The position numbers were made by a program, and so were the translations under genes. DNA of 64,000 nt from Podarcis bocagei (taxonomy: Eukaryota), in assembly GCA_964188305.1 (NCBI GenBank), contig OZ076889.1; one strand, 5' to 3'. Within the stretch, counting starts at the first letter, position 1. Every line of letters begins with the position of its first letter. Shown one piece after another: positions 19,960-20,530 of this stretch. The notes beneath the pieces were generated by a model. That model was not told the DNA's origin. It was given only the letters and a program-made list of their open reading frames with translations, and searched no databases.

Positions 19960-20530
19960 CCAAGCAACTACCATGGTCAGATAGTTCATACTTGTGGACG
20001 GGATAGTACCACATCCCTGCTAACTTTTTGCTAGCCCATTTGGTCCAGATAAAGTACCCTGAAGATGAACTCAGCAGTAACATGTTCATGACCCAGACTA
20101 CAGCCTGGGAGTCATTCCATTGAGCATATTGAACTAGAGCTTCTATGGTGGGTGGCAGCTTGTCCATACGTCTGACAGGAAAGATCCATTCGGGTTTTGT
20201 TCATAGAGCTGAGAGGACGTATGTCACCATTTGTGACAACAGTCAGTTTTGGAAGTGATGGGATTCTAAGTATAGCTCTTAAAAGAAGTGACAGGCCAGC
20301 TACATAAATTTCTCTATGACATCTTCATATGGCTGCCAAACCTATCAGGTTAAGTTGTTCACTCTTGCCATTAAGGAGGATATTGACTTGCAACCAAATT
20401 AATGTACGTAACACTGGCAAGGATCCTGGTCTTCTTCTGTAAATCACAAATGCTATATGCTATTGATGTTTAACATCATACCTATTTCAAAGACCACATC
20501 ACATATCTACAAGGGATTAGTCAAGTTAGC
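19960..20530 (-). mobile_element. Frameshifted DNA-transposon coding fossil, AcademX-like (XPG-like region plus LPPT motif)
   Basis: Hand translation across frameshifts: SLPVLRTL/FGCKSISS/NGKSE/VWQPYEDVIEKFM*LACHFF*ELYLESHHFQ/LTVV..RPLSSMNKTRMDLSC/MDKLPPTIEALVQYAQWNDSQAVVW..FIWTK. Confidence 0.7.

Follow-up and report, generated by a model that had tools for sequence, protein, structure and literature searches.

A likely remnant of the nuclease-encoding tail of an AcademX-type DNA transposon gene in a lizard genome

AcademX has been described as the nuclease-encoding lineage of the Academ DNA transposons, with target site duplications (TSDs) of 3-4 bp (PMC10045372, citing Kapitonov and Jurka, 2010; Kojima, 2020), and Academ elements in bivalves average 5.6 kb (PMC10294476). 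A C/DxxH motif is the signature of the hAT, P, MuDR, Kolobok as well as Dada transposases (PMC9587614). An Academ transposase fossil of amniote age has been reported in the human genome, near NDST4 (Frith, 2022; PMC9004415), so that ancient activity of Academ in the amniote stem is already published; the supplement of that study holds no Academ rows. No paper that names both Academ and XPG, or that gives protein motifs for AcademX, was found among the open papers searched, and those on DUF6589 were uninformative. The stretch of lizard DNA analyzed here (64 kb in all, hereafter the window) contains on its minus strand ~330 bases that are most likely the broken remnant of the nuclease-encoding tail of a DNA transposon gene of the AcademX type. 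Like the human fossil, this is a solitary, degraded piece of Academ-type coding sequence of ancient origin in an amniote genome, and its recognition needs a sensitive, frameshift-aware DNA-protein comparison. However, the human fossil matches the transposase (Academ-1_NV_tp), whereas the fossil in the window matches the nuclease and the adjoining tail, here called the LPPT region after its most conserved motif, and lies in a lizard.

We consider it likely that positions ~20420-20090 (minus strand) represent a pseudogenised fragment of a cut-and-paste DNA transposon with the architecture described for AcademX, and that they derive from the 3' part of its one large gene. The initial annotation had read a collinear run of about 150 codons over 19960-20530; this run is real over roughly 110 codons (~20420-20090), where three significant blocks stand in order and properly spaced. 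This supports the reading as a decayed piece of a transposon protein, from its XPG/FEN-like nuclease and LPPT region, but the outer parts of the run did not hold. In the direction of the gene, the span begins with an H3TH-like block of the 5' nuclease (20354-20420), in which LPVLRTLI is followed by a frameshift and GCKSISSLMARVNN, against a family consensus of LlafHAlTGCDttSsfagkGKk. A decayed spacer (20211-20353), which includes VWQPYEDVIEKFM and two stops, separates this from the next block; its length fits the family, and its sequence is not individually significant. The R..LF block (20175-20210; SSMNKTRMDLSC, consensus esvnelRvklfs) immediately precedes, in a different frame, the LPPT block (20093-20173; RRMDKLPPTIEALVQYAQWNDSQAVVW, consensus LPPT.dAL.qH.kRAnYQalvW), the latter being the remnant of a conserved helix that follows the nuclease domain. 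Decay is evident throughout, as at least three frameshifts and two stops fall within ~110 codons, the aspartate of GCD, invariant in the family, has become lysine (GCK), and in the LPPT block H has changed to Y and R to W at positions likewise invariant in the family. When 19700-20800 was read on the minus strand, the peptide strings quoted in the initial annotation were found to be spread over three frames; SLPVLRTL, FGCKSISS, NGKS, VWQPYEDVIEKFM, SSMNKTRMDLSC, and FIWTK are all present, but the first string reads DVVFEIG rather than D.WVVFEIG. The open reading frame starting MDKLPPTIEALVQYAQWNDSQAVVW occupies 19952-20167, and the longest open piece, of 82 aa, occupies 19955-20200 and includes RRMDKLPPTIEALVQYAQWNDSQAVVW (both minus strand).

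The family to which this fragment is compared was recovered through the LPPT motif, LPPTxxALxxHxxRAxYQ, which was turned into a degenerate DNA pattern of ~44 bits. The pattern matched >120 loci in metagenome contigs, where <1 would be expected by chance, which indicates that the motif derives from a real and abundant gene family; viral contigs gave 0 matches. At these loci, open reading frames of up to 1,422-1,639 aa occur, in which the motif lies 110-150 aa before the C-terminus. Upstream of it these proteins carry EEADTR...DTDV...LP.FHA.TGCDT.S.F.GKGKK..WK...E.FVC.LY...R..LF, and downstream of it P.P...GW and a CGC...C.C...C..C.C cluster. The motif order given in the initial annotation (LP.FHA.TGCD..S.F.GKGKK..W, then LPPT..AL..H..RA.YQ...W, then a Cys cluster) is thus found in natural loci. 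When the C-terminal 437 aa of one member served as a protein query, 273 homologues were returned, typically of 1,530-1,600 aa on contigs of 5-8 kb and in many cases annotated as PF20231 (DUF6589). Their hosts are corals, an anemone, a sea urchin, a firefly, a sea spider and lancelets, together with the fish Coilia grayii, so that the family occurs mostly in invertebrates and in at least one fish, in agreement with the initial annotation. Intact members are single proteins of ~1,500 aa that combine a DUF6589 DDE/RNase-H transposase, a 5' nuclease of FEN/XPG/XRN type, the LPPT helix, and a CXC cysteine cluster. One order on one strand (a ~1,100-aa N-terminal region, nuclease, LPPT, Cys cluster) is kept in all sub-lineages, decayed copies included.

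Near-identical copies within single assemblies show that these elements have been mobile. In one family, the termini read TAGTA[C/G]AGCAGCTTAGC...TACTA, at least five copies differ in their flanks, and the one copy with both ends (L109) has TAGTA...TACTA termini and a 3-bp TAT TSD; no unambiguous terminal inverted repeat (TIR) or TSD was found at the termini of another family (L047/L006/L095). In a further contig (L054:2456-2487), two termini of WLWD01-family elements stand head-to-head (…GCTGTACT|AGTAGAGC…), which looks like an end-to-end junction or a tandem or nested insertion.

The nuclease had been called XPG-like, and both structure and profile comparisons agree with a FEN/EXO1/XPG/XRN-like fold. 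The C-terminal 443 aa of the family are predicted to fold with a pLDDT of 85.5, and every match returned by a Foldseek search of this model against the PDB was a 5' nuclease from the PIN-like/FEN superfamily (XRN2, XRN1, EXO1, T5 FEN, mycobacterial FEN, Rad2, and XPG; E from 8e-6 to ~1e-3). The family profile matches the H3TH region of human EXO1 (E=0.015), and the Cys cluster matches the CXC domain of LIN54 (E=0.044). Six invariant carboxylates (E172, E173, D175, D199, D201, and D255) would fit a two-metal nuclease. The family nuclease therefore shares with FEN1/EXO1/XPG (Rad2) and XRN the fold (PIN-like plus H3TH), the “GCD...G.GK” motif, and carboxylate clusters; it differs from them in identity (9-14%), in giving no match to Pfam XPG_N or XPG_I, and in being fused to a transposase on one side and to the LPPT helix and CXC cluster on the other. 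Compared with FEN1/XPG/Rad2, the window copy keeps only a remnant of the H3TH, with GCK for GCD and the acidic motifs gone. For the transposase, the DUF6589 region (P0005:492-1142, alignment A2) was predicted with a pLDDT of 85.1, and exhaustive structural alignment placed the P element transposase first (Z 9.7 over 278 residues), followed by retroviral integrase cores (Z ~8), Hermes (Z 7.6), Tn5, IstA, Mu, Mos1, Transib, and RAG1. These structural matches, in particular to the P element, integrases, and Hermes, identify DUF6589 as a transposase of the DDE/RNase-H type that contains a helical insertion domain, and in which the conserved DNID, ITxDQALY, and DQALEWxN are candidate catalytic positions. 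Where hAT, P, MuDR, Kolobok as well as Dada have C/DxxH, the relatives have an invariant GGLH (G201, G202, and H204 in A2). No helicase-linked DUF6589, which would provide a link to AcademH, was found in an Atlas search.

Homology of the window to this family was assessed with two profiles. Profile 1, made from the C-terminal region of 20 loci that had been selected by the motif, has a bias at the LPPT positions, which inflates the LPPT score; profile 2, built from 126 sequences gathered by homology over the whole domain, was used to check this bias. With both profiles, the LPPT piece ranks first among the 4,338 six-frame pieces of the window (hmmsearch E=0.0026 with profile 1; E=0.031 with profile 2). 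The LPPT block itself (20173-20093) scores 30.3 bits with profile 2, against a null of 10.0±1.8 (0/500), and 32.8 bits in the frameshift-aware alignment with profile 1, where the maximum among the 127 other 1-kb bins is 23.4; against the best reference (L086), 13 of 27 residues are identical. Upstream, the gapped frameshift-aware alignment gave mixed results. With profile 1, it was exceeded in 0/600 null trials under relaxed penalties and in 11/600 (p=0.018) under moderate ones, with scores at null level for the reversed profile and for the opposite strand, whereas profile 2 gave no significance (p 0.08-0.28). For this reason, an anchored test with few parameters was chosen, in which the LPPT codon serves as the anchor, the best ungapped score of each conserved block is taken near its expected position, and 5,000 random anchors provide the null. 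In this test, the R..LF block (SSMNKTRMDLSC) scores 13.0 bits at 8 nt from its expected position (0/5,000, p<2e-4), and the GCD..GKk sub-block (GCKSISSLMARVNN, 20395-20354) scores 10.2 bits at -3 nt (p=0.0006), GCK being separated from the L of LPPT by 237 nt where the profile predicts 234 nt. The summed statistic over the anchored blocks gives p=0.0044. An ungapped scan for the R..LF block was reached by 17/1,000 in the null, and its joining to the LPPT block by a frameshift alignment with moderate penalties scores 33.9 bits against a null of 19.0±3.0 (0/300). Recognition of the fossil rests on ~50 residues in three short blocks.

The supported span is set at ~20420-20090 because nothing could be detected of the catalytic core (read as DVVFEIG), of the Cys cluster (read as FIWTK), or of a transposase part. 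The upstream extension claimed for 20421-20530, with DVVFEIG as the DTDV catalytic motif, is unsupported, as the DTDV and EEADT blocks in this region give p=0.91 and 0.14 in the anchored test and far-upstream gapped tests give z of 0.5-1.6. Downstream, the claimed extension through FIWTK and a Cys cluster (19960-20092) fares no better: gapped tests beyond the LPPT block give z of -0.7 to 0.4, and the GW and CXC blocks score at chance. As matches to the family, DVVFEIG, FIWTK, and the Cys cluster accordingly score as chance would, and the acidic motifs EEADT and DTDV together with the C-terminal CXC cluster have been truncated or have decayed past recognition in the window. Within the span, the LlafHAlT sub-block (LPVLRTLI) taken alone and the FVC.LY block are at chance level in the anchored test (p=0.50 and p=0.66, respectively). 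A gapped dynamic-programming extension with relaxed penalties, running from 20608 to 19948, needs ~25 frameshifts and was not accepted beyond the three anchored blocks. A sub-lineage (“clade B”, L013/L051) was considered as the nearest relative on account of its W..W motif and rejected, since its LPPT block is one residue longer and, compared with the window, has the lowest rank. Across the whole 64 kb, neither the full-length profile nor tblastn detected a transposase (DUF6589) region, and no second copy of the fossil region occurs elsewhere in the window; no element termini, TIRs, or TSD were found for the window copy. Single-sequence searches were equally unproductive: Pfam gave no match for five open pieces of the fossil, phmmer with the 82-aa piece against 1.84 billion representative proteins returned no family member (its two matches being a repeat protein and the artefactual protein P0001, discussed below), a word-based protein search with the same piece gave no candidate, and an Atlas feature search gave no usable lead.

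Two minor features lie beside the supported span. A second, out-of-order H3TH-like match (IVLPTLIARVSSSTFPMTAMKGKKALFRKQ; 19745-19834, minus strand) is located downstream of the LPPT block, with 3.4 bits ungapped (20/1,000 in the null), and several references match 19870-19730 by tblastn; the match IVLPTLIARVSSSTFPMTAMKGKKALFRKQ is probably due to chance, and it could be a second fragment. On the other side, at 20559-20706 (minus strand), the translation is of low complexity and rich in Lys, Glu, and Arg (ERKRKGQQDKEKYE, SKQDREKRRETVIEKE), and it draws spurious relaxed-penalty alignments to charged parts of the profile.

The AcademX name is probable for the family, judged by its match to published descriptions of the lineage. 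All of the traits tested, namely a transposase with an XPG-like nuclease, the lack of C/DxxH, one 3-bp TSD, and element size, are consistent with AcademX. The relatives of the fossil resemble AcademX in joining a DDE transposase and an XPG/FEN-type nuclease in one element, in being elements of ~5-6 kb with short TIRs, a 3-bp TSD in one copy, and no C/DxxH, and in being hosted mainly by invertebrates, with fish in addition. The window copy differs in that it consists of only ~110 codons of the nuclease tail, without transposase, catalytic core, TIRs, or TSD. The name given in the initial annotation is accordingly upheld as plausible only. It is conceivable, although in our estimation unlikely, that the fragment is genuine for the family and that the family belongs not to Academ/AcademX but to a different, perhaps still unnamed, DDE superfamily with a FEN-like nuclease. 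The label was set from published traits, Pfam gives the transposase region as DUF6589 only, the nearest solved fold is that of the P element transposase, and accessory nucleases have been acquired elsewhere, for example by Kolobok (PMC9587614). However, the accessory nucleases described for Kolobok are of the DEDDh, PD-(D/E)xK, and His-Me types, none of them XPG-like (PMC9587614), and the C/DxxH signature of hAT, P, MuDR, Kolobok as well as Dada is absent from the relatives, while a nuclease and TSDs of 3-4 bp are what has been described for AcademX (PMC10045372), in line with the one 3-bp TSD seen.

A more radical alternative would hold that the match itself is due to chance, with an open reading frame containing Pro and Leu that happens to resemble the LPPT motif and with the other blocks picked by eye. 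The empty single-sequence searches, the lack of significance of most of the listed blocks, and the noise of 10-15 bits that high-scoring pairs reach in this region would all be expected under such an explanation. Nonetheless, it is very improbable, as the LPPT block stands 8-11 standard deviations over the null, two more blocks with p<=6e-4 lie 3-8 nt from their expected positions, and the reversed profile and the opposite strand score at null level. It would be comparably surprising if the stretch were part of a host gene domesticated from the family, or a fossil kept through exaptation for a regulatory role. Exaptation has been noted as a reason for the survival of many protein fossils of great age (Frith, 2022; PMC9004415), and the locus is conserved in several related species; yet conservation among the species compared is uninformative, because their divergence is only 0.5-2.5%. 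Domestication is further opposed by multiple stops and frameshifts in 110 codons and by the loss of the catalytic Asp, and the substitution density relative to an ortholog is not below that of the flanks: of 22 differences between the window and the orthologous contig L001, 3 fall in the fossil core where 5.5 would be expected, which, not being a depletion, gives no hint of constraint. The reading as a decayed transposon nuclease tail holds, with AcademX as its probable label.

Copy number was approached by placing reads and contigs on the window at 80% likeness or more. At this threshold, 19928-20509 has single-copy depth, which puts the fossil outside any young repeat family, while neighboring stretches are hundreds- to thousands-fold deeper. 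Runs carrying the labels of at least seven or eight related organisms contain the fossil locus, and the insertion is thus older than the split of the related species that have the locus. Two orthologous contigs are 99.5% and 97.5% identical, and L001, a 1,331-bp Logan contig of run ERR14042333, is 98.3% identical over window positions 19551-20879. A 179-aa “protein” (P0001) has been called on L001 at 650-1189; as in-frame TGA codons are translated there as W, it is an artefact of ORF calling over the orthologous locus and no gene.

With regard to how an intact element of this family may work, it is proposed that the transposase carries out excision and integration of the 5-6 kb element, that DNA ends or flaps are presumably processed by the structure-specific nuclease fused to it, which would fit the short TSDs, and that the CXC module may bind DNA. 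The copy in the window does nothing and drifts neutrally, given its stops, frameshifts, and lost GCD aspartate, and its lack of transposase, core, and termini. It is ordinary ancient genomic debris without a working gene and of modest interest, and as a functionless fragment it leaves the picture of amniote-age Academ fossils (Frith, 2022) unchanged. Its value is that of a data point on the DNA transposon superfamilies once resident in reptile genomes, drawn from a kind of fossil that standard searches miss. Tentatively, and with more doubt than confidence, the fragment may point to an AcademX lineage, not annotated so far, with past activity in the squamate or an earlier amniote germ line; such a lineage, if real, would widen the vertebrate record of a transposon type that is mostly found in invertebrates and fish, and a horizontal arrival could be indicated should copies prove young or patchy. 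A by-product of the search is a working account of a transposase-nuclease fusion that is widespread in metazoans and the transposase domain of which is still listed in Pfam as a domain of unknown function (DUF6589).

The surroundings of the fossil had been described as CR1 and L2 debris. No reverse transcriptase domain was found by Pfam in 73 flanking ORF pieces, so that this part of the initial annotation could not be sustained, but the flanks do carry high-copy repeats. Very high-copy interspersed repeats occupy 20898-21867, and with the genome sampled at roughly 1x, the raw-read depth on each strand reaches ~600-750 at 21480-21867. Many reads connect 21117 directly to 21639, leaving out 521 nt, which indicates that other copies of the outer repeat are without the 21118-21638 insert and that this insert represents a nested insertion.
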